IMG/VR virus record: IMGVR_UViG_3300009104_001827
Location: 124,001 to 188,000 of that record
Direction: 5' to 3' (one strand)
Length of the DNA stretch: 64,000 bases
Shown here: positions 4,385 through 60,402 of the stretch, piece by piece
How the letters are laid out: each line of letters opens with the position of its first letter
Numbering within the stretch: the stretch's first letter is position 1
Position numbers and translations under genes: made by a program
The notes under the pieces: generated by a model
What the model was told of the DNA's origin: nothing
Seen by the model: the letters and a program-made list of their open reading frames with translations, nothing else
Databases searched by the model: none

Positions 4385-5200
4385 TTATAAGTTTTTTATA
4401 TCCTGAACCCACCCGTCTTCTTTTGTTGTTAAGCGCCTGTATTTTCTGTAGCTGGCGGTCCATATGGATCCTGGCATTTTTGCTATAGGCAATACATCGA
4501 AATTTTCCTTCATGATTTTTTTGGACTTATACTCCTTAGGTTCAACGTTGACCGCCTTTAACAATGCGTGGCAAATTAATTGCTCTGGAAACCTGAACCT
4601 GCACTTCTCGGACGTGGTCGACAAAAACTCCGCTAACTTAAAGCCGTCCTTTAGGCTTCTTGTTCTACCTCCGATGATATGATCCGACGGGTGAAACTTC
4701 TCCGCAGAGTCTTTTCGGAAGTAAATGTCCGAAGTGAGGAATTTTCCGATAAAATCGGCGCTTATAAGCTTTCTGTAAAATACATCTAGCGCTGGAAATA
4801 TTTCGTCAGATCTGGTTTTGATAGAAAGATAGCCGGTCGCTCGCTTGAGCCCGTTGTGGGTTGTGTGATTTTGATAAGCCCATGGATTCGGCCCTCTTTT
4901 TGAATTGTTGTTTTTGTACCGAGATAAATTGTTGTAATCATTTTGTTCGATATGGACCAGCGGATCTTCGACAAAGTCTTTGATAATGCCCGTGTCGTCG
5001 TCGCTCCAGTGGGAGATTACTAAATTGCCATACTCCTTGTACTTGGTGTCTTTAATTAGCTTAAGATAGTGAGGGATGGACTCGTTCATTCTTTTATGGA
5101 GTGGGCCCTGTACAATAATGGATAGTGAGCACTCTAATCTTTTAAACCTAATGAGTAGATCCTTTAGAAAGTTTACCTCCCAAGACTGATTGTTGACCAT
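4385..5200 (-). CDS. WavE-like LPS/glycan biosynthesis protein
   Basis: SIIVQGP, VISHW, IKTRSDE motifs resemble WavE; sits in sugar cluster. Confidence 0.6.
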   Translation of the reverse strand: MVNNQSWEVNFLKDLLIRFKRLECSLSIIVQGPLHKRMNESIPHYLKLIKDTKYKEYGNLVISHWSDDDTGIIKDFVEDPLVHIEQNDYNNLSRYKNNNSKRGPNPWAYQNHTTHNGLKRATGYLSIKTRSDEIFPALDVFYRKLISADFIGKFLTSDIYFRKDSAEKFHPSDHIIGGRTRSLKDGFKLAEFLSTTSEKCRFRFPEQLICHALLKAVNVEPKEYKSKKIMKENFDVLPIAKMPGSIWTASYRKYRRLTTKEDGWVQDIKNL

Positions 5201-20786: not shown

Positions 20787-21926
20787 ATGAGGGTAGCAAT
20801 CACAGCAACACTAGACTACAGTTTTTTCTCCAACGGGCTAATTCAGAATATTATATCCCTATATGAATTACTAGAGAAGTGTGGATTCAAGGTTTCCCTG
20901 CTTGATTTCGGAGACAAAAGCAGAAGTGGCTCGACCCATGCCCATAATAAACTAAACAAGAAAAATATATTGCGCTGGGGCGAATTCACCAGGAAGCAAC
21001 AGCACTTTGATTTAGTTATATGCGCAGGAGTATCCCTCGATGAAAACTTAAAAGATTCGCTAACCAAAGCCAACCCCAAAATAAAAACAGTGGGAGTACA
21101 TTACGGCAATAATTTAATTAACCTGATGTGCGAATGGTTTTCAAAAGTCCCGCCCAAAAGGATTTCCGGGCACCCCGACTGCCCCCCGATGAAGCTTAGG
21201 CATGAAAAACTATACGAAGAAACGTGGATCTCGGAACATTATCTTTTCGCAAAAGAATTTTATGAATACACAGACGAAAGCCCGGTCCGCACAATGCCCT
21301 ATATATGGAGCCCCAGTTTTATTGAAGGGGAGGCAATAGACCACGGAATTAATATAAACTATATTCCAGTCAAGAAACCCAACTTAGCCGTGGTCGAGCC
21401 TAATATAAATATATCAAAAAGCTTTTTAATTCCGATGCTCGCAATTTCAAGCGTCCTAGAATCCAGCCCAGACATATTTGAACATGCATGTATTTACGGA
21501 TCGGATTCCTTTTTTAGGAACAGAGAGTTCCTTAAGGAATGGATACACGACTGCACGTCGCTCGGAGAAAACAAAGACCGATTCACATTCTTCCCCAGGA
21601 AGCCCATTCCAGGCATTATGCACGTGAAAAATCCAGCAATAATAAGCCACCAACACTTAAATGAATTAAACTACACACACCTAGAAGCCCTGTTTTGCGG
21701 TTACCCATTAATACATAATTCTCCCCCATTTAAAGAGTTTGGATATTTCTACGAAGGCTTCAACCTTCTGGAAGCCGCAGAAAAAATAAAAGAAGCAATA
21801 GAACAGCACAACGACAACCTTTCAGCATACTTAGAAAAAGGGAAAGAAGCCGCCTGGAAGTACAGTCCTGAAAATCGAAGCAATATTGAGTGCACTAAGA
21901 AGCTGGTACTAGATTTGTTTAAATGA
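20787..21926 (+). CDS. DUF2827-family putative glycosyltransferase
   Basis: SNGLIQN, VVEPNINISK..LIPML, ISHQHLNELNY..LEAL..GYPLIHNS, GYFY. Confidence 0.8.
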   Translation: MRVAITATLDYSFFSNGLIQNIISLYELLEKCGFKVSLLDFGDKSRSGSTHAHNKLNKKNILRWGEFTRKQQHFDLVICAGVSLDENLKDSLTKANPKIKTVGVHYGNNLINLMCEWFSKVPPKRISGHPDCPPMKLRHEKLYEETWISEHYLFAKEFYEYTDESPVRTMPYIWSPSFIEGEAIDHGININYIPVKKPNLAVVEPNINISKSFLIPMLAISSVLESSPDIFEHACIYGSDSFFRNREFLKEWIHDCTSLGENKDRFTFFPRKPIPGIMHVKNPAIISHQHLNELNYTHLEALFCGYPLIHNSPPFKEFGYFYEGFNLLEAAEKIKEAIEQHNDNLSAYLEKGKEAAWKYSPENRSNIECTKKLVLDLFK

Positions 21927-31347: not shown

Positions 31348-31376
31348 TTGACACAGGGCCCACTTTGTGATACCAT
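31348..31376 (+). promoter_or_regulatory. sigma70-type promoter for helicase operon
   Basis: TTGACA, 17 bp, TGnTACCAT; ATG 10 nt downstream. Confidence 0.75.
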
Positions 31377-33950: not shown

Positions 33951-35020
33951 GCGCCAAGAAGGTATATCTCTCAGCCAGCAGAATTAAGACCGCACAACAA
34001 TGCTCTTGGACCTATTGGTGCAAATATATCCTTAAACTGCCAGACAAATCCAACGACGGCGCCAGCAAGGGGTGGATCTGTCATTTAATTTTTGAGGTGC
34101 TTGGAAGAAAAGATCGAAACGACATTTTAAATCTAATACTCTCCGATGGCTCAATATGGGGCGTTCCGGCTATCGAACGTCTAGTACTATACCACGCCAA
34201 AAGATTAAACGTTAACACCGACGAACACCTCGGAGAGATCGACAGGATGATACTAAACGGCCTCAATTACGACTTTGGCGGGCAGCACAAGCCGGGACTA
34301 GAAAAAGAATTCTCCGAAAAAGACTTCCAACTTTCAGTGGACGAGGAAGGCATTAAGTATAACATAAGAGGCTTCATAGACAAGCTATTCCTCTACGAAG
34401 ATAAGCGGGCTATAATTAGGGACTTTAAAACCAGTAAGCAAAAATTCAAAGGGAAAGAGCTTACGGACAACATGCAGGACCTAATGTATTGCCTCGCCGT
34501 AAAAAAGATGTTTCCAGAATACAAGAGCGTATCAGAATTTCTTTTTCTTAAATTCGATCTAGATCGAGATTTATTCGGGAGCCCCGGCACAGGAGTAATC
34601 AGGATGGACGATATTAGCGATGACGCCCTAGAGGGGTTTGAGTATGAATTAACAGAAATCCAAAAATACCTAGAAACGTTTGACTCAAGCAAGGCCACCA
34701 GCAATTTTGCGGGGGCACAAGATTACCCCAAGGATGGAACCTTTGGCGGGCCGCTAGCGTGCGGGAAAGATGGATTTAAAAAGTGCAAAGGAGAGAACGT
34801 GCTAGATTCCTCCGGAAACCCAATTAAAGCCTTCATATGTGCCTTCAGGAAGCCCTTTAAGTATTATTCTCTTGTAGACGAAGGGGGGAATATTAAAAAA
34901 AGTGTATTTATTGATGACCTCGAAGGACTAAAGGAGTCCGCACTCGAAGGAGAAACTATCAAGGAAAAAGAATATGAAGGATGCCCATACTGGAAAAGAA
35001 AAGACAGGGGAGAACTATGA
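33947..35020 (+). CDS. PD-(D/E)XK nuclease (RecB/Cas4-like)
   Basis: LSASRI..QQC, RGFIDKL, RDFKTSK, QDLMY, C-terminal CPYW. Confidence 0.85.
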   Translation: MSAKKVYLSASRIKTAQQCSWTYWCKYILKLPDKSNDGASKGWICHLIFEVLGRKDRNDILNLILSDGSIWGVPAIERLVLYHAKRLNVNTDEHLGEIDRMILNGLNYDFGGQHKPGLEKEFSEKDFQLSVDEEGIKYNIRGFIDKLFLYEDKRAIIRDFKTSKQKFKGKELTDNMQDLMYCLAVKKMFPEYKSVSEFLFLKFDLDRDLFGSPGTGVIRMDDISDDALEGFEYELTEIQKYLETFDSSKATSNFAGAQDYPKDGTFGGPLACGKDGFKKCKGENVLDSSGNPIKAFICAFRKPFKYYSLVDEGGNIKKSVFIDDLEGLKESALEGETIKEKEYEGCPYWKRKDRGEL

Positions 35021-35420
35021 ACAAGCCCCTTATGTTGGCACCGCGCTCCTATTCAAGAACCTTATTCTTTTAGCAAAAAGAATAGAGATATGTCCACATA
35101 CAAAAGAACGAGTCAAATACGGCGGGTATTGGTCGATTTTTTGCGGAGCAGTAGAAGAAAATGAAGCCCACTATATCGCTGCACACAGAGAGGTCTTCGA
35201 GGAGACTGGCCTAAATCTAGATAAAAAAATGTTTGTGCATCAAGAATTAGTTGAAGACCTACGCCTATATACTTATGAACTTGATGAAATGGTCCACCCT
35301 ACATTGAATTACGAACACACAGAGTGGGGGTATTTCAAAATAGATCAAATCAAAATAAGCCCCACCCCAATAGACGAAAAAATTGCGGAGAGGATACAGG
35401 GCTTCAGGCGGTCTGTGTAA
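34974..35420 (+). CDS. NUDIX hydrolase
   Basis: GAVEENEAHYIAAHREVFEETGL Nudix box; start uncertain. Confidence 0.88.
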   Translation: MKDAHTGKEKTGENYEQAPYVGTALLFKNLILLAKRIEICPHTKERVKYGGYWSIFCGAVEENEAHYIAAHREVFEETGLNLDKKMFVHQELVEDLRLYTYELDEMVHPTLNYEHTEWGYFKIDQIKISPTPIDEKIAERIQGFRRSV

Positions 35421-35429
35421 TTATAAATA

Positions 35430-36704
35430 ATGAAAAGGAGAACCTTTATAGAGGTTGGCGCAGCAACTGGAATTGGCAGTCTCACCTTGCCCCAATTGCT
35501 TGCGTCAAATAAAAGAGCACTTAATGATAATAAATCGATTATCGTTGTTTGGATGAATGGAGGGCCGTCACATCACGAAACCTTTGACCCTAAACCATAC
35601 GCACCCCAACCATTCAAGGGGCACTTTGAGGCGATCCCTACAGTTGCAGACGGGATACAGCTCCCCGAGCATCTAGTTAAGTGCGCGGACTGCATGGACA
35701 AATGGGCCATAATTAAGGGGCTATACCACGACAACAACAACCATAGCTCTGCGCATGAAATTATGCACTCTGGCTACAAAGCCAAGGAGCCTAATCAGCA
35801 ACAAAATTTTTACCCCAGCATAGGATCAACAATTGCGGAACATGCCAAGAGAGACGGCGAAGTTCCCCCATATGTTGTTATCCCCAACCACAGCAGAGGA
35901 ACTCGTCCCGGATATTTGCCTCATGAATTCGGGCCTTATGAAACAAAGACTCGCCCTTCTTCTAGCGAAACATACAAAGACACGAATTTCACACTCAACG
36001 AATCACTAACCATTAATAGAGTTGACAATAGAGGAGATTTATTAAAATCCTTCGATAACTTTAGGTCGGTTTTAGATAAATCTGGAATGACGAAGTCCAT
36101 TGATGAATTCAACATAAAAGCTCAAGGACTACTTACTAGCGGGCAAGCAGCAAAGGCCTTCGATATTGAAAAAGAATCTACATTCACAAAAGATTTGTAT
36201 GGCCCAGGATTCGGCCGTGATTTACTACTCGCAAGGCGCTTAGTTGAAAACGGCGTAAAAATGGTTACCGTAAAAACTCCCTTTGGCTGGGACACTCATC
36301 AAGCGAGCGACAAAAGCATGGGAAACAAGAACCTGCCCCAGTTCGACGTGGCGTTTAGCGCGTTAATTAACGACCTTCATTCCAGAGGCATGATGGAAGA
36401 CGTTATGGTTGTAGCTTGGGGTGAATTCGGTAGAACCCCAAAGATTAATGCCAATGGAGGCAGAGACCATTGGTCTCGCTCAATGGCTGCCGCCATCGCA
36501 GGAGGAAAGGTGAGCGGGGGCGTTGTCGCCGGAGAAAGCGACAAAACTGGCTCAGAGCCCATAACAGGAATAACCCCTCCAGACGTACTAGTTACGCTTT
36601 ATGACCACATGGGAATAAACCCAAAACACAATTACTATGATCACAGCGGGAGACCTCACCCAATAATTAACTCAGGTAGAATACTTACAGAATTATTCGT
36701 ATAA
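35430..36704 (+). CDS. DUF1501-family protein with Tat signal
   Basis: MKRRTFI Tat motif; MNGGPSHHETFDPKP, GWDTH, WGEFGRTPKINANGGRDHW; GTGTAA at 35415-35420. Confidence 0.9.
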   Translation: MKRRTFIEVGAATGIGSLTLPQLLASNKRALNDNKSIIVVWMNGGPSHHETFDPKPYAPQPFKGHFEAIPTVADGIQLPEHLVKCADCMDKWAIIKGLYHDNNNHSSAHEIMHSGYKAKEPNQQQNFYPSIGSTIAEHAKRDGEVPPYVVIPNHSRGTRPGYLPHEFGPYETKTRPSSSETYKDTNFTLNESLTINRVDNRGDLLKSFDNFRSVLDKSGMTKSIDEFNIKAQGLLTSGQAAKAFDIEKESTFTKDLYGPGFGRDLLLARRLVENGVKMVTVKTPFGWDTHQASDKSMGNKNLPQFDVAFSALINDLHSRGMMEDVMVVAWGEFGRTPKINANGGRDHWSRSMAAAIAGGKVSGGVVAGESDKTGSEPITGITPPDVLVTLYDHMGINPKHNYYDHSGRPHPIINSGRILTELFV

Positions 36705-36713
36705 TATAAACAA

Positions 36714-38678
36714 ATGAAAAATAAAAAACTCAAACAACTATCCATTATTAATTTAATTATAGGATATATAACATTAATGCTATTTAGCTTATTAGTAATA
36801 CTGAACCAACCGACAGAATTGATGGCTGAAGATCAAGACCTTACAGTGGTCAAGGCTTCTGACGAAGATAAAACGGAAGCCCTAGAGCCGCCAGACGAAG
36901 TTAGCGCAAAAGAAAAAGAAATAATCTATATAGACGGGCACCCAACAACATATATTAGAGACAATAGTATAGGCGTAGATAGGCTATCAGGTGTAATTAT
37001 TGATAACGTACCCAACAGACTGGTCGAAAGGGACGACCTAAGGGGTAATATCGCGATAGCAAGAGACACTAGAAATGAAAACCTATTAATAGATAGGCGC
37101 GATAATATAATTATTGATGAAACAATTGATAGACACAATTATAGCAATAGGACTGGCGCTAGCGTCGGTGATAGGCTATATGGGGTTCGTAATAACTCTT
37201 TTGTTGATAATAAAAACAATAGAAGAGATCGGTTGGTTGAAGACATTGATGCTGGAATTCTAGATAGGAGGCTAAATGAGGCAAACCCCTTCGAGGAAAA
37301 CACTGAAGAAGTCGGCGAAGACTTTGGATTAGACGGAAACGATTTCGCTGGAGTTACGCTAGCAGAAGACGATGAAGGTGAGTTAGATTTTGATATTGAC
37401 GATTTCAAAAATGCAGAAATGGGCTCAAAAGGCTACGGAGTCGATAAAGGAAACCTGTACGCCTACAACTACCCCAGCCAGGGCGTTGGAGCTGGTATTG
37501 GAAATGCCGGTGTTGGCGCCGCAGCAGGATTTGCGGGCATTGGCGCCGGAGTTGGACAGGCAGTACTCAACGGAGAAACCGTCCCTACCCTAGGAGGAGT
37601 AGGAACATCTCCCATCATTCCCGGCAATCTGGAAGTTACCCCCGAAAACGACAGAGACGGAGATGGGCTTCCCGCCTCAGTTGAATCTCAAATTGGAACC
37701 AACCCAAACAATGCCGATACAGATGGTGACGGCCTAAGCGATGGAGACGAAGTGTTTAGCTATTCTAACCCCCTAGATAAAACAAGCACCCCCCTCGATT
37801 CCGGCTCGGCTCCCCTCCCCCAATTTGGCGGGGTTGGCGGCTTAGTCAGTGGAGCAGGATCAGGTGTTGCGGCCGGCTTGGTAACCGGCATGGTTAAGAA
37901 GCAACTCGGAATTGGAATTGCCCCCAAGGGGTGCGCCGAGTGCGGAGGTGAGTGCAAAGGGCACGGACACGGGCACGGACACGGAAAGCACGAATACGAT
38001 TTGCCGCCCGATGGAGCGTTGCACATTATGATCCATGTCGACGGAAGTGGGAGTATTCTCGCAACCAGGCGCCAGCTGGACATCATGAAGGACACTCTTA
38101 TGAAGGACGCGCTACTTCCCTACTATAATAATGACGAGTCTCTATACAATAAGAGGGTGACCATTATAGATAACTCGGGAGAACGAACGCTGAGATTCTA
38201 TACGGAAGCAGCAAAGAAAGACAATGTTCTAGCGATTGCGTTCCAAGATGAAGCGGCCCCCGATTATCACCTACCCAATTTTAATAAGACCCCACAAAAT
38301 GCGTATAGCGCAGACTTGGGCAAGCTTAGATCGAACCTGAACGGATACGGCGGATTATACAGAGGCATAATGTTCCAAGTGGACAGGGGACGCACTTTTG
38401 CAAAGTCGTTCAAGGAGCTTGTCGAGTGCGCGTGGAATGGAGAGGGGTACCTGGAAAAACCGGGGACGAACCTCAAGAAGTATCACAGAGACAACAACCT
38501 GCACAATATCAAGAATAAGAACGGAATCGTTTTCAGTGATGAGTATCACGCGAAGTCTGAGGGTGATCCACAATACTATTTGGACTTGATCTTCAAGGCT
38601 TCGAAACGAGTGGGTCTGGACCTTCAAGCAAAGGGCGCTGGACTTACGGACGGTAAATATAACCAAAAGATTGATTGA
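36714..38678 (+). CDS. Exported protein with Ca-binding DxDxDG repeats, His-rich linker and vWA-like domain
   Basis: N-terminal hydrophobic anchor; DRDGDG/DTDGDG; CAECGGECKGHGHGHGHGKH; VDGSGS MIDAS-like motif. Confidence 0.65.
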   Translation: MKNKKLKQLSIINLIIGYITLMLFSLLVILNQPTELMAEDQDLTVVKASDEDKTEALEPPDEVSAKEKEIIYIDGHPTTYIRDNSIGVDRLSGVIIDNVPNRLVERDDLRGNIAIARDTRNENLLIDRRDNIIIDETIDRHNYSNRTGASVGDRLYGVRNNSFVDNKNNRRDRLVEDIDAGILDRRLNEANPFEENTEEVGEDFGLDGNDFAGVTLAEDDEGELDFDIDDFKNAEMGSKGYGVDKGNLYAYNYPSQGVGAGIGNAGVGAAAGFAGIGAGVGQAVLNGETVPTLGGVGTSPIIPGNLEVTPENDRDGDGLPASVESQIGTNPNNADTDGDGLSDGDEVFSYSNPLDKTSTPLDSGSAPLPQFGGVGGLVSGAGSGVAAGLVTGMVKKQLGIGIAPKGCAECGGECKGHGHGHGHGKHEYDLPPDGALHIMIHVDGSGSILATRRQLDIMKDTLMKDALLPYYNNDESLYNKRVTIIDNSGERTLRFYTEAAKKDNVLAIAFQDEAAPDYHLPNFNKTPQNAYSADLGKLRSNLNGYGGLYRGIMFQVDRGRTFAKSFKELVECAWNGEGYLEKPGTNLKKYHRDNNLHNIKNKNGIVFSDEYHAKSEGDPQYYLDLIFKASKRVGLDLQAKGAGLTDGKYNQKID

Positions 38679-38703
38679 CTTTTTGCCTCCCCGACAACAC
38701 AAT
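38675..38703 (+). promoter_or_regulatory. sigma70-type promoter for clpP
   Basis: TTGACT, 17 bp, CACAAT; ATG 38711. Confidence 0.5.
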
Positions 38704-38710
38704 ATATTGT

Positions 38711-39448
38711 ATGTCAAACAAAAGTAAGGACCGAACACCAGAAGAGATAGAGGCTAATGTCGAAAAATTAAAAGCCGAAGCATCAAAAGCTCAGGCTGAA
38801 GCTCGGAAAGTTATAGCTGAAGCGGATACCGCAGAGACAAGAGCTCAAAAGGAAAGGTTTGAGTTCGAAAGGTATCAGGAAGAAAGAAAAAAAAGGCTTT
38901 CCGTTGATAGGGAAAATCGCGTATATCGATTCAGTGGTGGGGTAGATAAATCCTCAGTTGAAAAATGCAGAGACGCCCTAACTGAATGGTCGAGATGCTC
39001 TCCAGGGTGTGATATAGAAATTGTATTTGCCTCCCCTGGCGGAGGAATAACTGCGGGGTTTGAATTATTTGACTACATCCAGCAATTAAGATTTGCGGGT
39101 CACAAAATCACAACAGGATCTTTAGGTATGGCTGCATCTATGGCGGGCATATTGCTTCAAGCTGGCGAACATCGCTGGATTGGGCACCAATCTTGGATAC
39201 TAATACATCGGGCAGCCTTTGGGGCCATTGGTAAAACTTTTGAAATTGAAGATGAGGTGGAATTAATTAAAAGAATTGAAGAAAGGATAATTGAAATTTT
39301 CACCTCTAGATCAAATCTTACAAAATTAAAAATTAAAAGAAATTGGAACAGAAAAGATTGGTGGATAAATGCAGACGAAGCGCTAGACATGGGTCTTGTT
39401 GACGAAGTTAGAGGCAAACTGCCAGAGGGAAAAAACATCGGCGGCTAG
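38711..39448 (+). CDS. clpP: ClpP-family serine protease
   Basis: SPGG, GMAASMA (Ser), ILIHR (His), DWWINADEALDMGLVD (Asp); coiled-coil N-terminal extension. Confidence 0.88.
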   Translation: MSNKSKDRTPEEIEANVEKLKAEASKAQAEARKVIAEADTAETRAQKERFEFERYQEERKKRLSVDRENRVYRFSGGVDKSSVEKCRDALTEWSRCSPGCDIEIVFASPGGGITAGFELFDYIQQLRFAGHKITTGSLGMAASMAGILLQAGEHRWIGHQSWILIHRAAFGAIGKTFEIEDEVELIKRIEERIIEIFTSRSNLTKLKIKRNWNRKDWWINADEALDMGLVDEVRGKLPEGKNIGG

Positions 39449-39544: not shown

Positions 39545-39573
39545 TTGACAATTAAGCTTAAATCGGGTAGACT
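39545..39573 (+). promoter_or_regulatory. sigma70-type promoter for polymerase operon
   Basis: TTGACA, 17 bp, TAGACT. Confidence 0.7.
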
Positions 39574-44028: not shown

Positions 44029-46557
44029 ATGATGGAGCACAAACCAAACTTTACCCCCAGAGCGCAGAGGGCAATAGAAATATCAAAAAAAACCGCCAAA
44101 GACATGGGCTCGAAGACCGTTGCGCTCGAGCATCTTTTCCTGGGCATACTGCACCTCAAAGCAGGAGTAATCCACGAAGTGCTCTTGGGAGTGGGAATCA
44201 GCCCTGCTAATCTTATTACTGCCATTTCCAATAGAATAAAGGAAGAGGCAGTCTTCCACGCCTCTGAAGACACTCCCGAATTTGATCCAAAATTCAAGCA
44301 GGTACTAGAAATAGCTGCACTAATTAGCAAAAATTTTGGGCATGATTATGTAGGGATAGAGCACATGCTTTTAGCAATGCTAAAATATGACGGTTCTCCG
44401 ATTAATGAGTATTTCAAACTCCTCGACATACCCGAAGATCTGATTATTGAACAAATTAAAAACTATTTTCAGCTTACAGTGCCGGAGGTCCCGATCATAG
44501 GAGGGTTCCACCCTTTCTTTATAAATCCCCAAGGAAACCCCCAGAACCAAGCAGGGGCAGAGCCCTCCCAGAGTAAGCCCCGGCGCCAAACGATGATCGA
44601 TAAGTACGGGGTTAATTATGTGGAAATGGCGGCAGATAATAAATTTGACGAAATAATAGGAAAAGAATCCGAAATCCTGGAGGTATGTGAAATTTTATGC
44701 AGGAGAATAAAAAACAACCCAGTACTCCTGGGAGACCCTGGCGTTGGGAAGACTGCAATCGTAGAGGGCCTCGCGCAGTCTATAGTAAAAAGCTCCGCAC
44801 CAGAACACCTGCTTGATAAGCAGATATACGGGATAGATCTAGCCTCTATGATTGCGGGAACCAAATACAGGGGGCAATTTGAAGAAAGGCTCAAAGGAAT
44901 GCTTGAAGAAGCGATAGAAGACGATAGGATAATTTTATTCATTGACGAGCTGCACACCTTAGTCGGCGCTGGCAGCGCAGAAGGAACAATGGATGCGGCA
45001 AACATATTAAAACCCCTCCTTTCAAAAGGAGCCATAAGATGCATTGGAGCGACAACAAACAAAGAATACAAAAAAAGCATACTTAAAGACGGTGCGCTTG
45101 ATCGAAGATTTCAGCCCGTAACATGCAGGCAACCAAGCGAAAAGGAAACCCTAGAGATACTTAAGGGGGTAAAACATAAATATGAGGAATTCCATTACGT
45201 AGACTACGACCAAGAGTGCCTTAAGCTCATAGTAGATTTGGCAGCAAGATACATTCCGTCAAAGCAATTCCCTGACAAAGCGCTAGACATATTAGATCAA
45301 GTAGGCGCAAAAGTAAAAATAAAATCTTTTGTCCGGCCTAAGAAAAGCAAGGCAATGGAGCTAGAACTGGAAGACCTCATGAGAGAAGAAGATATCCTAC
45401 GAGGTCAAGGAATAGATTGCTCAGGAGTAAACAAAAAACAAGAAGACCTTCTAGAAAAATACTCAAAGTCCCTGCAGAACTGGGCAAACAAAAACTTTAA
45501 AAACAGAAAACGAATAAGGCCTCAGGATATTTACAGAACCGTCTCCCAACTCACCAACGTGCCCATGGCAGAACTCTCAAGGACTGACGCCCAGAGATTT
45601 CTCAACCTTGAAGATAAAATGAAATCAAAGATTATTGGGCAAGACCATGCGGTCGCGACAATCTGCAAAGCAATACTACGCTCAAAATCTGGACTCAGAA
45701 ATGAGAGCAAACCAATCGGCAGCTTTCTGCTTCTAGGTCAGACCGGTTTGGGTAAAACCTATACCGCAAAAACGATAGCCTCATCCCTTTTTGGGAGTAG
45801 TTCTGAAATAATTGCGGTAGACATGAGCGAGTATTCTGAAAAAATTTCCAGCACAAGACTATCGGGCGCTGCACCAGGCTACGTTGGCTACGAAGAGGGT
45901 TCCGCGCTAATAGACAAAATCACAAAAAACCCATATAGCGTAGTATTATTTGATGAAATAGAAAAGGCACACCCAGACGTAATCCAGTCTCTACTACAGG
46001 TCCTCGAGGAGGGTAGATTAACAGACGGACTAGGAAGGGTTGGCGATTTTACAAATAGCATAATTATCCTAACAGGCAACATAGGCTCGGAAATTGCCGG
46101 ACAGGGCGGTAGTATGGGATTCGCAGCAGCAGAAGACCAGCATTCTATTATTGTTGACAAAATTACCGAAAAGGCGAGCCAAGCACTTAGGCCAGAGTTT
46201 GTAAACAGGATAACAGAAGTTATAGTTTTTAATTCATTTAGTAAAGAAGATTTTTCCAAGATATTAAACTTAGAGCTCAAACCATTAAGGAAGAAACTCA
46301 AGGAAAGAGACATATCCCTACGCATAGGAAAGAATCTAAGAAGTTCAATTATAGAGAAAACTCAAGATTCAAACTATGGCGCCAGGCCTGTAGCAAGAAT
46401 AATTCAAAAAGAAATAGAGGACGAACTGGCTGAACTCCTAATTAACGGGAAGCTCAAAGACGGCGAAAAAATCTCTTTCACTGGGTCCGTCGGAGAAGTA
46501 AGTTATTCCATTACGGCAAAACCGGCTTCTGAGGATCAAACGCCTCCTCTTCCTTAA
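44029..46557 (+). CDS. clpC: ClpC/ClpA-type Hsp100 AAA+ ATPase
   Basis: Clp N-domain, GDPGVGKT, FIDELH, short M domain, GQTGLGKT, FDEIEKAH, SMGF loop. Confidence 0.9.
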   Translation: MMEHKPNFTPRAQRAIEISKKTAKDMGSKTVALEHLFLGILHLKAGVIHEVLLGVGISPANLITAISNRIKEEAVFHASEDTPEFDPKFKQVLEIAALISKNFGHDYVGIEHMLLAMLKYDGSPINEYFKLLDIPEDLIIEQIKNYFQLTVPEVPIIGGFHPFFINPQGNPQNQAGAEPSQSKPRRQTMIDKYGVNYVEMAADNKFDEIIGKESEILEVCEILCRRIKNNPVLLGDPGVGKTAIVEGLAQSIVKSSAPEHLLDKQIYGIDLASMIAGTKYRGQFEERLKGMLEEAIEDDRIILFIDELHTLVGAGSAEGTMDAANILKPLLSKGAIRCIGATTNKEYKKSILKDGALDRRFQPVTCRQPSEKETLEILKGVKHKYEEFHYVDYDQECLKLIVDLAARYIPSKQFPDKALDILDQVGAKVKIKSFVRPKKSKAMELELEDLMREEDILRGQGIDCSGVNKKQEDLLEKYSKSLQNWANKNFKNRKRIRPQDIYRTVSQLTNVPMAELSRTDAQRFLNLEDKMKSKIIGQDHAVATICKAILRSKSGLRNESKPIGSFLLLGQTGLGKTYTAKTIASSLFGSSSEIIAVDMSEYSEKISSTRLSGAAPGYVGYEEGSALIDKITKNPYSVVLFDEIEKAHPDVIQSLLQVLEEGRLTDGLGRVGDFTNSIIILTGNIGSEIAGQGGSMGFAAAEDQHSIIVDKITEKASQALRPEFVNRITEVIVFNSFSKEDFSKILNLELKPLRKKLKERDISLRIGKNLRSSIIEKTQDSNYGARPVARIIQKEIEDELAELLINGKLKDGEKISFTGSVGEVSYSITAKPASEDQTPPLP

Positions 46558-49967: not shown

Positions 49968-51554
49968 TTAATATGTCACCTTCACACTGTCCCGAAAAGC
50001 TTTCGCGAATCTCTCGCGGAGGCTCTCTTCAGTTTCAATGGATTCTCCATTGTTATTAGGAAGGCTTGCGTCTTCAGAAGTCGCTTGGTCGAGGGACTGC
50101 TCCACATCTGCGGTAGCCTCAGCCTCTTCAACAGCTTCTTCTTTAACGCTTTCTTCGGTAGTAGCCTTAGATTCCAATCTCTTGGTAACTTCGGCCTCGA
50201 TCTTGGCTTCCATTTCGTCGGCCAATTTTTGTAAATACTCTTTATTCTTTGTCTTGAATAATACCGCAAGCTTTTCTTGATATTCTGCGAAAGCTTCGTC
50301 GGCTAGATCCAGAGAAGAAACTTCCGATGCGACGATCTTCTTGTCTTCGCTGTCAAGCTCATACAATTCCTCAATCGCCTCCATACGGGAATCAAATCTC
50401 GCACGCGCTTCTCTTTCAGCATTCTCTTCCTCGAGACCTTCTAGCTTGGTTTCGGTTTCGGTAAGCTTCTCCTGAAGTTCCGAGAGTGTTTTTGCCAGCT
50501 CATCTTTCTGAGTCTGGGCTTCGGCTTGGTCAGCTTTTGCTTGTTCGATCTGGTCGACATACTCTTGGCTTTTCTCGCGAATGGCGTCATGAAAAACCTT
50601 AGTAATGTTGGCAATAGCTTCATCCGAAAAGTCCTTCGCAGCCGCCTTTTCAGAAAGGAGCTGTTCAATATCTTTTAATAGTTCTTGCTTTTCCATAGTA
50701 TTAAGAAAAAATTCGTGGTCAGATTGTATTACATTAGTGGATTCTAAATGAGAACTTTTTTCTTTATCAGTATAATGCTCCCTAACGCGTTGATCGTCAA
50801 CTTTTTCTTTATCCTCCGCCAAAGATTCTTTAGTTAGGACTCCAGTAACATCTGCTGCGGGGGTATTAGTGAACCCTATCCCCAAGGGGTATATCTCACC
50901 AACAATAAGCCTATTGACCTTTTGCCCATCTTCAAGTTCGCCGCTACCACCAAATGATTTTAAATGAGGGGTCAAGGCTTCCACCTCAGCAGGATCAGTA
51001 ATAACCTCCGAGTCCCCAATGTTACCGTTGCCGACGGCAACAGCAAATTCGTTAAAGCCTATCTCCCAACTTGCGGAAACACTATTATATGATTCGCTTT
51101 CAGGATCAGAAGAAGCGAGCAGTACATCCGCAAACTCCGGCGACGCAGTCTTATATACTACTGCCCCCAAAGATATGTTGAACGGATCGCTTGAGCTTGC
51201 ATCCACTTCGCTTAAGATTTCTCCCTCACCCTTGTACTCGGAAAACTCTGCAGACACGATATGGCCAACGATATTGTCCTTTTGGTGTTCTATGTTTGTG
51301 GGCTTATGAATAAAATAATCCTTAATTGCCATCGCCGACATAGTGTCAATCCCATCCCCGTTTTGATTAAATTTATTAACCACCGCAGCATTAAATGCCA
51401 CACCGACCAGATCGATATTTCTGTCTAGATCTATACTATCCGGAATTAATTCCTTAAGGGGCTCAAGCGATGCAGTCGAAATATTCATGTCCTCAACAAC
51501 AGAAGAGGCAGTAACAACGCTTTTGAATTTTGCAGTATATTTAAATTTTTCCAT
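49968..51554 (-). CDS. Prohead protease fused to scaffold
   Basis: NQNGDG, KPTNIEH, SASWEI, GIGFTNTPA; acidic coiled-coil C-terminal half. Confidence 0.85.
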   Translation of the reverse strand: MEKFKYTAKFKSVVTASSVVEDMNISTASLEPLKELIPDSIDLDRNIDLVGVAFNAAVVNKFNQNGDGIDTMSAMAIKDYFIHKPTNIEHQKDNIVGHIVSAEFSEYKGEGEILSEVDASSSDPFNISLGAVVYKTASPEFADVLLASSDPESESYNSVSASWEIGFNEFAVAVGNGNIGDSEVITDPAEVEALTPHLKSFGGSGELEDGQKVNRLIVGEIYPLGIGFTNTPAADVTGVLTKESLAEDKEKVDDQRVREHYTDKEKSSHLESTNVIQSDHEFFLNTMEKQELLKDIEQLLSEKAAAKDFSDEAIANITKVFHDAIREKSQEYVDQIEQAKADQAEAQTQKDELAKTLSELQEKLTETETKLEGLEEENAEREARARFDSRMEAIEELYELDSEDKKIVASEVSSLDLADEAFAEYQEKLAVLFKTKNKEYLQKLADEMEAKIEAEVTKRLESKATTEESVKEEAVEEAEATADVEQSLDQATSEDASLPNNNGESIETEESLRERFAKAFRDSVKVTY

Positions 51555-58793: not shown

Positions 58794-59738
58794 TTACATT
58801 ATTTCTATAATGGCCCAAAGGGCCGTAATCGCCATTGCTGCAATAATTAAATATTTTTTATTAAACTTTTTCTTCTCAGGCTTTGGATCAGGTTCTGGAT
58901 CAGGTTCTGGATCAGGTTCTTTCTCCTCGGACTTAACGTCTAGATAATAGGGTCCGACGGCATTAATGATCGCATCCCGATATAAAGAATCCTCCATGAA
59001 AAAGTACCCTTTGTTCCCGAACCATCGCCCCCAGCTATTTTGAAACTCCCAATATAGCTTCCCGTCAATCTCCTTCCAGCCAATCATCGACACTGCATGC
59101 CCACCGACAACTTCGGAGGACAAAAACTTATCAGAATTCACAACGCCCGTGCTGTCGGTTTGAAAAAAATGCCTTCTGACCTTAATCGACGTCCATAGAG
59201 GCTCTTTTAATAAAGCCGACTTAATCCGGTCTGTATCTCCCTTGGGAATTACATAGTATCCATTAATCTTATACTTAAGCGCGTTCTCCGGAGCCTCAGG
59301 AGACATGGGCGCCCCCTCCTTGCGGAGGTCTGGCCAATATTTCTCTTCGCAGCACCCTTCTTTGACCAGCCCCTTGCATGCGCCACGGATGGTCGTGCCG
59401 GAATAATCTTCTCCCGGCCAAGGGTCATATAATTGCCCTTTTTTATAAATCCACATAGCACTAGGCTCCTTGTCCTTGAATTCTTCCGTCGAACCGTAAA
59501 CAACGCGGCCGCTGTGGCCAACGCAAGACCCAATTGACCCTTGGTTCTTGACGCGAGGCGTAAGGTCGCGCCTGGAAAACTCCTTTAGATCAACCTCTCT
59601 GGCTCGCCATATCCTTGAAGTGATCCAGTCTCTGGAATCAACGGGGGCATCAGGCACGTTTAATTTACATCTTCCGAAATATTTAGCTCTAGCTTTTTGC
59701 GCTATCCAACTTCCCGATAATATATTTAAGTATTTCAC
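58794..59738 (-). CDS. Papain-like (C1) cysteine protease with C-terminal membrane anchor
   Basis: NQGSIGSCV (Cys), GGHAV (His), QNSWG (Asn); PEPD linker, basic residues, TM; alternative start GTG 59657. Confidence 0.88.
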   Translation of the reverse strand: MKYLNILSGSWIAQKARAKYFGRCKLNVPDAPVDSRDWITSRIWRAREVDLKEFSRRDLTPRVKNQGSIGSCVGHSGRVVYGSTEEFKDKEPSAMWIYKKGQLYDPWPGEDYSGTTIRGACKGLVKEGCCEEKYWPDLRKEGAPMSPEAPENALKYKINGYYVIPKGDTDRIKSALLKEPLWTSIKVRRHFFQTDSTGVVNSDKFLSSEVVGGHAVSMIGWKEIDGKLYWEFQNSWGRWFGNKGYFFMEDSLYRDAIINAVGPYYLDVKSEEKEPDPEPDPEPDPKPEKKKFNKKYLIIAAMAITALWAIIEIM

Positions 59739-60402
59739 TTCTCAGTATGTCCTCTTTTCCAAATCTAAATGCATGTATACCTCTCTTTACACTTTCCCTG
59801 TCGTTAAACAGGTCAAACATGGCCGGAAATCCACTCTTTCCATTGATGTCGCTCTGCATAAAGTCTCCACAAATAAACAATTTGCAATTCTCCCCAATTC
59901 TAGTGACAAGCGTCGTAAGCTCCTTATAGGTAAAGTTTTGAGCTTCATCTGCAATTACGATCTTATCCTTCCAGTTTGCTCCTCTAAGATAATTTATCGG
60001 CATTGCAGAAATTCTGCCACTTTCAAGCATTTCCCTTTTGGCAGTATTGTTTTTAGGAAGCATTTCATAAAGCTTGTCCTCCAGTGGCGCCATATAGGGA
60101 TTGAATTTTTCATCTATATCCCCAGGCAAGGCCCCAAGCCCCTTTTCTGCGCTCTCAATGACTGTGCGGACATATAGTAAATCCATCTTATCTGACGCAC
60201 TCAAAAGCCTCAACGCAGAATAAACTGCCATATAAGTTTTAGTGGAGCCCGCCGGTCCGGCGACAAACATTATCTTAGTATCATCGTTGAACGCGATAGA
60301 CAAAAACCTTTTCTGCCTATCCGTCAACCTTAGTGAATGGATATGAACGCTTTGTGCCAATTGTGGGATAACAAAATTTTTTTTAGACTTATCGTGAGCC
60401 AT
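59689..60402 (-). CDS. phoH: PhoH-family ATPase
   Basis: GPAGSTKT, YLRGANW, DEAQN, GDFMQSD. Confidence 0.93.
   Translation of the reverse strand: MAHDKSKKNFVIPQLAQSVHIHSLRLTDRQKRFLSIAFNDDTKIMFVAGPAGSTKTYMAVYSALRLLSASDKMDLLYVRTVIESAEKGLGALPGDIDEKFNPYMAPLEDKLYEMLPKNNTAKREMLESGRISAMPINYLRGANWKDKIVIADEAQNFTYKELTTLVTRIGENCKLFICGDFMQSDINGKSGFPAMFDLFNDRESVKRGIHAFRFGKEDILRSEILKYIIGKLDSAKS

Follow-up and report, generated by a model that had tools for sequence, protein, structure and literature searches.

A DUF1501 gene resident in a marine jumbo-phage lineage encodes a predicted, putatively exported hydrolase and points to hosts among PVC bacteria

The window analyzed here is a stretch of 64,000 nucleotides (bases 124001-188000) of IMG/VR virus record IMGVR_UViG_3300009104_001827, a 211,117-bp virus genome with a GC content of 43% and a CheckV completeness estimate of 100%, and the gene in question is a member of the DUF1501 family encoded on its forward strand. 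The window carries genes for the large terminase, a family-A DNA polymerase (PolA), a DnaB-like helicase, a primase-like protein and a PD-(D/E)XK nuclease, together with NUDIX, ClpP, ClpB-like ATPase, ribonucleotide reductase (RNR) and PhoH genes. IMG/VR contains more than 600 relatives of the terminase, but the nearest ones among deposited phages are only about 27% identical to it; the phage belongs to an uncultured, cosmopolitan lineage of marine jumbo phages. An earlier note, made from the sequence without database searches, had located the DUF1501 gene within the replication region, and this is where it lies: the helicase, primase, nuclease and NUDIX genes precede it on its 5' side, and ClpP and PolA follow on its 3' side. 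The start given in that note, 35415, is the first base of an upstream GTGTA box; the open reading frame (ORF) itself begins at 35430 (Table 1).

The product matches Pfam DUF1501 (PF07394) with an E value of 1.5e-86 and 291.4 bits against a cut-off of 27, residues 35-423 covering positions 2-390 of the 390-position model. A profile search of the whole genome confirmed the assignment and returned no other DUF1501 gene in the 211,117 bp. The family motifs are intact, as had been noted before: GGPSHHETFDPKP, WDTH, GEFGRTP and GRDHW fall in invariant or nearly invariant columns of an alignment of 52 phage and cellular homologues, in which 40 columns are invariant, including D53, K55, H105, D288, H290, R335, D346 and H347. 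Neither PHROGs nor NCBIfam assigned the protein to a family. DUF1501 is expanded in the Planctomycetes-Verrucomicrobia-Chlamydiae (PVC) bacteria, has no known function and is usually paired with PSCyt/PSD1 genes (PMC3542564; bioRxiv 10.1101/150078), a background that the earlier note had given in the same terms. Our own counts agree with it: PVC genomes held from 42 to more than 150 DUF1501 matches each, 14,992 clusters at 50% identity matched the family at E ≤ 0.001, and a PSCyt2/PSD1 neighbor was present at 37 of 72 cellular DUF1501 loci.

The family is typically cellular, it has no PHROG, and tblastn searches of 50,697 GenBank phage records with the window's subfamily (type A) and a second one (type B) returned no match. 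All this would be expected of mis-assembled host DNA or of a recent pick-up without function, an explanation that we consider very improbable. No chimeric junction, which the earlier note had named as a refuting outcome, was found. Contigs of independent assemblies span the whole of 34300-37700, two of them with no differences and one of 148.5 kb, from another study, with 73 differences; contigs from four marine runs of one study contained 100% of the sampled words of this interval; and a second IMG/VR contig (49.9 kb) shows the same arrangement and is 100% identical over 21 kb. Since independent assemblies from two studies span both junctions, the gene is not chimeric and its phage-borne status holds. 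In addition, at least four further records place an orthologue in phage surroundings, with a variable gene order, and the upstream phage box is conserved. The gene is thus placed as auxiliary genes are, being a conserved, host-type, non-structural gene flanked by phage genes in a bona fide phage genome.

A passenger of recent origin would also be at odds with the strong purifying selection on type A and with the lack of a close cellular relative. All type-A copies seen here are on phage contigs or on contigs of phage size. Searching 5.8 billion proteins returned a tight group at 58 to 100% identity, on contigs of up to 187 kb, followed by a fall to 44 to 46%, and an exhaustive HMMER search of 1.84 billion cluster representatives showed a gap in identity from 64% down to 42%. 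In the trees, the type-A proteins (16-17 sequences, 58 to 100% identical) are monophyletic with support of 100/100 and nested within the PVC radiation of DUF1501; their sister is a cellular clade (support, 99/96), and identity to any cellular protein does not exceed 46%. Between related phages, DUF1501 is 79 to 84% identical, versus 44 to 71% for the flanking helicase, primase and nuclease. Nonsynonymous divergence (dN) is 0.14 to 0.30 and synonymous sites are saturated (proportion of differences pS, 0.77 to 0.91), so no numeric dN/dS is given. On this comparative evidence, the type-A gene is under selection, has long been resident and did not arrive as a passenger in recent times. Proteins of the cellular sister clade carry a conserved extension of the N terminus ahead of the twin arginine (...IGCxEF(R/H)xxL..., with a "GCxEF" motif), which is missing from all phage type-A proteins, and the two clades also differ by clade-specific substitutions (type A/sister clade: SHHETF/SQHETW, PSIGS/PSCGS and NNNHSSAHE/DAGHSxGDQ).

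The N terminus reads as a signal for twin-arginine translocation (Tat), with a K-R-R-T-F-I-E motif that fits the Tat consensus, 17 uncharged residues and a basic c-region (SNKR). The structure model has low per-residue confidence (pLDDT) over this segment, as a signal would show. The twin arginine is present in 12 of the 16 full-length type-A proteins, the others having RK (two proteins), RQ (one) or KR (one). The Pfam TAT_signal hidden Markov model (HMM) gave no match on the first 40 residues, and the same HMM matches a phage copy of another subfamily, type D, with an E value of 0.012. The "intact Tat signal" of the earlier note is a candidate one: its motif, hydrophobic stretch and basic c-region can be read from the translation, and the Pfam HMM is silent on it.

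An AlphaFold model built from 52 sequences (pLDDT, 82.8; predicted template-modeling score pTM, 0.83) predicts the core alpha/beta fold of the alkaline-phosphatase superfamily, as in nucleotide pyrophosphatases/phosphodiesterases (NPP), alkaline phosphatase and sulfatases, and Foldseek searches with this model listed sulfatases first (E of about 3e-6). Some type-B homologues have a secondary match to Pfam Phosphodiest. GEFG aligned with the sulfatase metal motif GDHG/TDNG in a profile search of PDB sequences and in an hhalign comparison with a cellular sulfatase, weakly in both cases (33-36 residues; E, 0.09 to 0.2). The invariant Asp and His residues (D53, H105, D288, H290, D346 and H347) could form a metal site; this tentative assignment was made by motif alignment. 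Ser47 of GGPSH was considered as the nucleophile and rejected: alanine replaces it in some cellular homologues and in the type-D phage copies, which makes a universal role as nucleophile unlikely. Together, prediction and motif alignment suggest a metal-dependent esterase of the alkaline-phosphatase superfamily, the fold being predicted and the chemistry conjectural.

Comparison with characterized members of the superfamily delimits this assignment. As in NPP and the bimetallo alkaline phosphatases of the PafA/SPAP type, several conserved Asp and His positions could build a metal site, and some DUF1501 proteins have the secondary Phosphodiest match. Sequence identity to these enzymes is only 8 to 15%, however; the window's protein has no sequence-level match to their families, no Thr or Ser nucleophile could be placed, and about 170 residues lie outside the shared core, including a long helical insert at about residues 188-260 that is partly of low confidence. 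Formylglycine (S1) sulfatases share the GEFG/metal-motif alignment, and sulfatase genes lie near cellular type-B loci, but the phage protein lacks the C/S-x-P-x-R formylglycine motif and has Phe in place of the His/Asn of the metal motif. Pfam Sulfatase (PF00884) had no match in the protein at E ≤ 0.01 and none in the genome. The protein is a true DUF1501 and, by its predicted fold, a member of the alkaline-phosphatase superfamily, and not a formylglycine sulfatase; its gene can be classed as a probable auxiliary metabolic gene.

The best structural matches are NPP enzymes, among them ENPP1, which hydrolyzes cyclic GMP-AMP, and the gene stands among genes of nucleotide metabolism and replication (NUDIX here; RNR and dUTPase in relatives). 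Together with the lack of a strict twin arginine in 4 of 16 orthologues, this might indicate a cytoplasmic NPP-like enzyme with a vestigial signal, reshaping nucleotide pools or degrading nucleotide immune signals. We regard such a role as improbable. Every full-length orthologue, and each of the four phage types, has a signal-like N terminus with hydrophobic stretch and basic c-region, and the cellular homologues are of Tat type and partnered with secreted PSCyt proteins (PMC3542564). Genomic position is weak evidence for a cytoplasmic role because the gene order around DUF1501 is variable.

The earlier note had also given the gene a GTGTA box of its own, and the genome bears this out. GTGTA occurs within 40 nucleotides upstream of 30 of the 231 ORFs of the genome, versus 2.1 expected, with a peak at -14/-15 from the start codon and only 105 copies in the whole genome on both strands. 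The box is retained at five of five type-A orthologues in divergent relatives. The class of genes that it marks includes phoH, the ClpB-like gene and very large ORFs, among them unannotated ones of 1,439, 1,649 and 3,032 amino acids for which a structural role is only presumed. The box is probably a promoter element of one phage-specific, temporal gene class. In a marine metatranscriptome run, contigs 95 to 99% identical to the window cover 35457-36647 and 36801-37700, and no contig of the same run lies on the upstream 1.1 kb (34300-35439), a pattern that suggests transcription starting at the GTGTA box. Scans for sigma-70 and terminator consensus sequences around the DUF1501 gene gave no excess over shuffled controls. 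Across the genome, a second word, CTTGACA, is enriched upstream of ORFs (16 versus 0.9 expected); it resembles a sigma-70 -35 element, is followed by a -10-like hexamer and looks like the mark of a sigma-70-type early-promoter class separate from the GTGTA class.

The gene is rare, as the earlier note had called it, with respect to isolated and deposited phages, that is, the GenBank records and PHROGs; it is not rare in IMG/VR, where a scan with a diverse alignment found at least 489 stretches encoding DUF1501, nor in its own lineage. Among 18 related virus records searched for PF07394, 12 carry it, including both of those that are at least 90% complete. Most of these carriers hold type B, which is 30 to 33% identical to the window's protein; in one relative (G007) the type-B copy lies just upstream of the block from a PHP-like gene to PolA that is found a few genes past DUF1501 in the window. 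In a further relative, type A is followed by an IscA/ErpA-like gene (L009:11284-11601), and that by a third type, C. For L003/L009, the idea that the second DUF1501 belongs to type B was rejected, this copy being of a third type and 47% identical to a protein of a Planctomycetota metagenome-assembled genome (MAG). Type D, in which GGxAxQE replaces GGPSH, makes up 69 of the best 80 viral matches, with at least 120 clusters at 90% identity, and occurs (L203-L274; records G019-G024) in complete genomes of 178 to 243 kb with a GC of 0.29 to 0.37, whose terminases are unrelated to that of this phage or 27 to 30% identical to it. DUF1501 is thus recurrent in uncultured large phages though missing from isolate-based resources. 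We found very few reports on phages of PVC bacteria in the searchable literature and none on a bona fide DUF1501 gene of a phage; the single mention is a weak CDD match of a 61-amino-acid Pseudomonas phage protein. What appears to be new is that phages carry DUF1501, how widely they do so, that a partner gene was captured along with it and the lead to the host described below; no paper on any of these was found.

The partner genes PSCyt2 (DUF1549) and PSD1 (DUF1553) were reported as absent from the window, and the absence extends to the whole genome: profile searches did not find them, an answer that is weak for PSD1, as its profile gave no match in any control genome, and tblastn with a PSCyt2/PSD1 protein was also negative. 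Absence of the partner is not, however, a general trait of these phages. In six of the 18 relatives (G006, G007, G011, G014, G015 and G016), PSCyt2/PSD1 lies directly upstream of type B (e.g., L189:6244-8388 in G007); the phage protein is 73% identical to a chromosomal copy of Verrucomicrobiota and, relative to the cellular protein, has an internal gap of about 110 residues. Such carriage, together with the usual pairing in cells (PMC3542564) and the location of the nearest cellular relatives (P0022 and L017) beside PSCyt2/PSD1, would fit a phage enzyme that docks on the PSCyt2/PSD1 and cytochrome-c-like PSCyt1 proteins of the host, taking the place of a catalytic subunit that is short-lived or limiting in a periplasmic and perhaps redox-coupled machine. 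For type A, this docking appears unlikely. The partner is found in none of the four type-A phage records, and seven of eight loci of the cellular sister clade have no PSCyt2/PSD1 neighbor, nor any conserved neighbor in common that would hint at function. Moreover, because type A is at most 46% identical to cellular copies, the interface with the host partner would need to have been kept over a long divergence. The pattern that docking supposes can be likened to that of cyanophage psbA, which is repeatedly exchanged with host genes and whose product replaces the host D1 protein.

Type-B copies of phages and cells are interleaved in the trees, and a single clade for the phage copies was rejected by the approximately unbiased (AU) test (P = 3.6e-6), a test weakened by the fact that the phage group was named after inspection of the first tree. 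In reading the trees, implausible MAG labels were set aside (L013, L017 and L030; "Klebsiella pneumoniae isolate HRSG-E1-bin-52" and "Akkermansia muciniphila isolate LH-..."). The phage copies are 87 to 90% identical to chromosomal genes of one order of Verrucomicrobiota, and the relatives appear to have acquired type B more than once from Verrucomicrobiota cells. The cellular type-B loci, on contigs of up to 340 kb, have the arrangement PSCyt2/PSD1-DUF1501-PSCyt1 near sulfatase, aminotransferase and leucyl-tRNA synthetase (LeuRS) genes, and NCBI labels the cellular copies as Verrucomicrobiota or Opitutae. Genes 59 to 65% identical to the LeuRS of one donor contig were found in 38 of 201 sampled Verrucomicrobiota genomes, versus 1 of 201 Planctomycetota genomes (53%). 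Type B had no match at E ≤ 1e-170 in a sample of 401 genomes across Verrucomicrobiota; within the order of the best LeuRS match, it was present in 9 of 201 genomes at 70 to 90% identity, and the two best of these (90% and 87%) both show the cellular gene arrangement and a GC of 0.425.

There is thus good evidence, from gene identity, that the relatives carrying type B infect Verrucomicrobiota. For the phage of the window, the host would belong to the PVC bacteria and, most probably, to the low-GC marine members of the same order, as judged from kinship and GC (0.41 to 0.43 at the donor loci versus 0.43 in the phage); the order is suggested because the type-B copies of its relatives are up to 90% identical to chromosomal genes there. 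Type A is 44 to 46% identical to proteins of this order and about 40 to 43% identical to those of Planctomycetota. The earlier note had called the DUF1501 gene the best host indicator in the window; it does point to PVC bacteria, though to nothing narrower, and type B of the relatives is the sharper indicator. One related record (G008), flagged as a provirus in IMG/VR, was read end to end and no host flank was seen.

Directly downstream, a gene for a 654-amino-acid protein is probably cotranscribed with DUF1501, a functional tie between the two being only putative. Its product has an N-terminal membrane anchor, glycine-rich stretches, bacterial thrombospondin-type-3 (TSP3), calcium-binding repeats, a CxxCxxxC-HGHGHGHG run and a C-terminal domain of about 230 residues that matches no family; a 60%-identical orthologue lies two genes past DUF1501 in a relative (L002). 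The presence of this anchored protein in the same RNA library, the very large, presumed structural ORFs of the GTGTA class and the occurrence of envelope-modifying enzymes in the alkaline-phosphatase superfamily, with LtaS and LtaP among the fold matches, could be taken to mean that the DUF1501 protein acts on the envelope, remodeling a phosphorylated or sulfated envelope or capsule component in the periplasm and so blocking superinfection or aiding lysis and release. This we hold to be quite unlikely. The protein has neither a membrane anchor nor the transmembrane domain of transferases of this type, and the LtaS-type matches rank below those to NPP and sulfatases. Furthermore, the relatives take up a host housekeeping copy nearly unchanged (88 to 90% identity) together with its partner, which fits the boosting of a host function better. 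Because such nearly unchanged host copies are captured repeatedly, we favor a boost of a host function over a new weapon.

Table 1. Features of the DUF1501 locus and other features of the phage genome (window coordinates unless stated otherwise)
Feature	Position	Strand	Remarks
DUF1501 coding sequence (type A), 424 aa	35430..36704	+	Predicted alkaline-phosphatase-superfamily hydrolase
Tat-type signal, residues 1-29 (MKRRTFIEVGAATGIGSLTLPQLLASNKR)	35430..35516	+	Twin arginine at 35436-35441; read from translation
Motif GGPSHHETFDPKP, residues 44-56	35559..35597	+	Right after first beta strand; G44, G45, P46, D53 and K55 invariant
Motif WDTH, residues 287-290	36288..36299	+	W287, D288 and H290 invariant; candidate metal ligands
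Motifs GEFGRTP (residues 331-337) and GRDHW (residues 344-348)	36420..36473	+	D346 and H347 invariant
GTGTA box	35415..35419	+	15 nt before ATG; overlaps TAA stop of NUDIX gene
NUDIX hydrolase gene, upstream	34974..35420	+	Last of helicase-primase-nuclease-NUDIX block; context only
Downstream gene, 654 aa	36714..38678	+	Starts 9 nt past DUF1501 stop
CTTGACA element, sigma-70-like promoter	31348-31376		Ahead of helicase-primase-nuclease-NUDIX block
CTTGACA element	39545-39573		Second example in window
ClpP protease gene	38675-39448	+	
ClpB/Clp-ATPase-like gene	44029-46557	+	PHROG 4871, E 6e-226; GTGTA box present
PhoH-like gene	59689-60402	-	Pfam E 5.5e-48; GTGTA box 21 nt upstream
DUF2827 gene	20787-21926	+	E 1.2e-53; GTGTA box present
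WavE-like gene (lipopolysaccharide synthesis)	4385-5200	-	Weak, E 5e-4, below cut-off; GTGTA box present
tmRNA (outside window)	G000:C1:55016-55391	-	Tag peptide ANNIVRFEDFTACGEELALAA
tRNA genes Leu-taa, Ser-gga and Thr-tgt	36773-37239		Contig coordinates of the tmRNA
tRNA gene Arg-tct	50188-50264		Contig coordinates of the tmRNA

Several further genes of the window and of related phages touch on these subjects. Its GTGTA box places the PhoH-like gene in the same upstream-motif class as DUF1501. The DUF2827 gene and the weak WavE-like gene, both with a GTGTA box, may be further envelope-related accessory genes. Two genes past type A in a relative lies a gene with a heavy-metal-associated (HMA) domain (L002:11869-12192); with the IscA/ErpA-type Fe-S carrier mentioned above, this metal-handling neighbor is a hint of cofactor loading. 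In record G003, a 278-amino-acid protein encoded on the opposite strand next to a type-B DUF1501 (L190:8907-9743) combines an adenylylsulfate (APS)-kinase-like P-loop domain (E, 8.5e-13) with a cytidylyltransferase-like part; it could be NadR-like, and a link to sulfur metabolism is speculative. The genome also encodes a tmRNA and, according to ARAGORN, four tRNAs (Table 1); the window itself contains no tRNA gene, and an Rfam scan of it gave no match.

Known systems offer two points of comparison. The first is the cellular DUF1501 of the PSCyt2/PSD1-DUF1501-PSCyt1 modules (Kamneva et al. 2012; PMC3542564), with which the phage copy shares the full-length PF07394 match, the invariant motifs, the twin-arginine-type N terminus and the length class of about 420 to 460 amino acids. 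It differs in standing under a phage upstream box, in having no partner gene anywhere in its genome and in its low identity. The second is the set of classical auxiliary metabolic genes that phages exchange with their hosts, such as psbA, pstS and phoA of cyanophages and phoH of marine phages. In common with these, DUF1501 is a host-type metabolic gene of a lytic-type phage, conserved in its lineage, under purifying selection and repeatedly captured from hosts by relatives, and phoH itself stands in the window with a GTGTA box. Unlike these, it belongs to a family of no known function, its product is predicted to be exported and the hosts are PVC bacteria.

The reading that we favor, with moderate confidence, is that of a long-domesticated auxiliary gene for a Tat-exported periplasmic metallo-esterase, in a marine jumbo-phage lineage with a PVC host. 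Transcription would be driven from the GTGTA class; the box, its enrichment and its conservation are observed, and the RNA start just past the box is suggestive. The protein would then fold in the cytoplasm, probably with metal ions, and leave through the Tat system of the host, as its twin-arginine N terminus implies. In the periplasm it would carry out metal-dependent hydrolysis of an ester, the fold being taken from the model and the fold search and the chemistry surmised from it, and would supplement, or substitute for, the DUF1501 activity of the host during infection. Type A would do so without phage-encoded PSCyt2/PSD1, unlike most cellular copies and like most members of the cellular sister clade. 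Our guess at the substrate is a phospho- or sulfo-ester nutrient feeding the synthesis of many 211-kb genomes; such a demand makes a connection with the supply of phosphorus or sulfur plausible.

A number of observations weigh against this reading. No DUF1501 protein has a measured activity, substrate, metal or localization (PMC3542564; 10.1101/150078). The Tat assignment is a motif reading on which the Pfam HMM is silent, and 4 of 16 type-A proteins depart from a strict RR, one of them having RQ. The metal ligands were assigned by a weak motif alignment, and Ser47 is not conserved across the DUF1501 types. A PstS or a sulfatase in the genome would have indicated scavenging of phosphorus or sulfur; profile searches found neither. 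The RNA evidence consists of assembled contigs from one run, 95 to 99% identical to the window, and RNA libraries can contain DNA. As for the host, type A alone fails to separate Verrucomicrobiota from Planctomycetota, its sister clade mixing both at no more than 46% identity, and the relatives from which the host was deduced have terminases only about 73 to 75% identical to that of this phage.

A wider analogy may be offered tentatively, and we would put it below an even chance: DUF1501, with or without PSCyt2/PSD1, might play the part for PVC phages that psbA plays for cyanophages. It would then form the catalytic core of a periplasmic machine whose acquisition of nutrients is rate-limiting, and several unrelated jumbo-phage lineages would have captured it repeatedly, as types A to D. 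If this were true, type A would represent a minimal, self-sufficient form of the enzyme and the first practical route to the function of one of the largest uncharacterized PVC families, and cosmopolitan jumbo phages of the sea for which no relative is in culture could be assigned hosts.

The finding itself is solid and gives a handle on an old unknown, the function of the enzyme being inferred. It provides a small, partner-free and highly conserved version of the enzyme for biochemistry and structure. It also provides a lead to the hosts, in one order of Verrucomicrobiota, of marine jumbo phages so far from any deposited phage that their terminase is only about 27% identical, and the GTGTA box is a candidate promoter signature for gene timing in these phages. 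A phage retains only those genes that earn their place. That one lineage keeps, replaces and re-acquires DUF1501, at times with its partner, is strong natural evidence that the enzyme limits something that a large virus needs.

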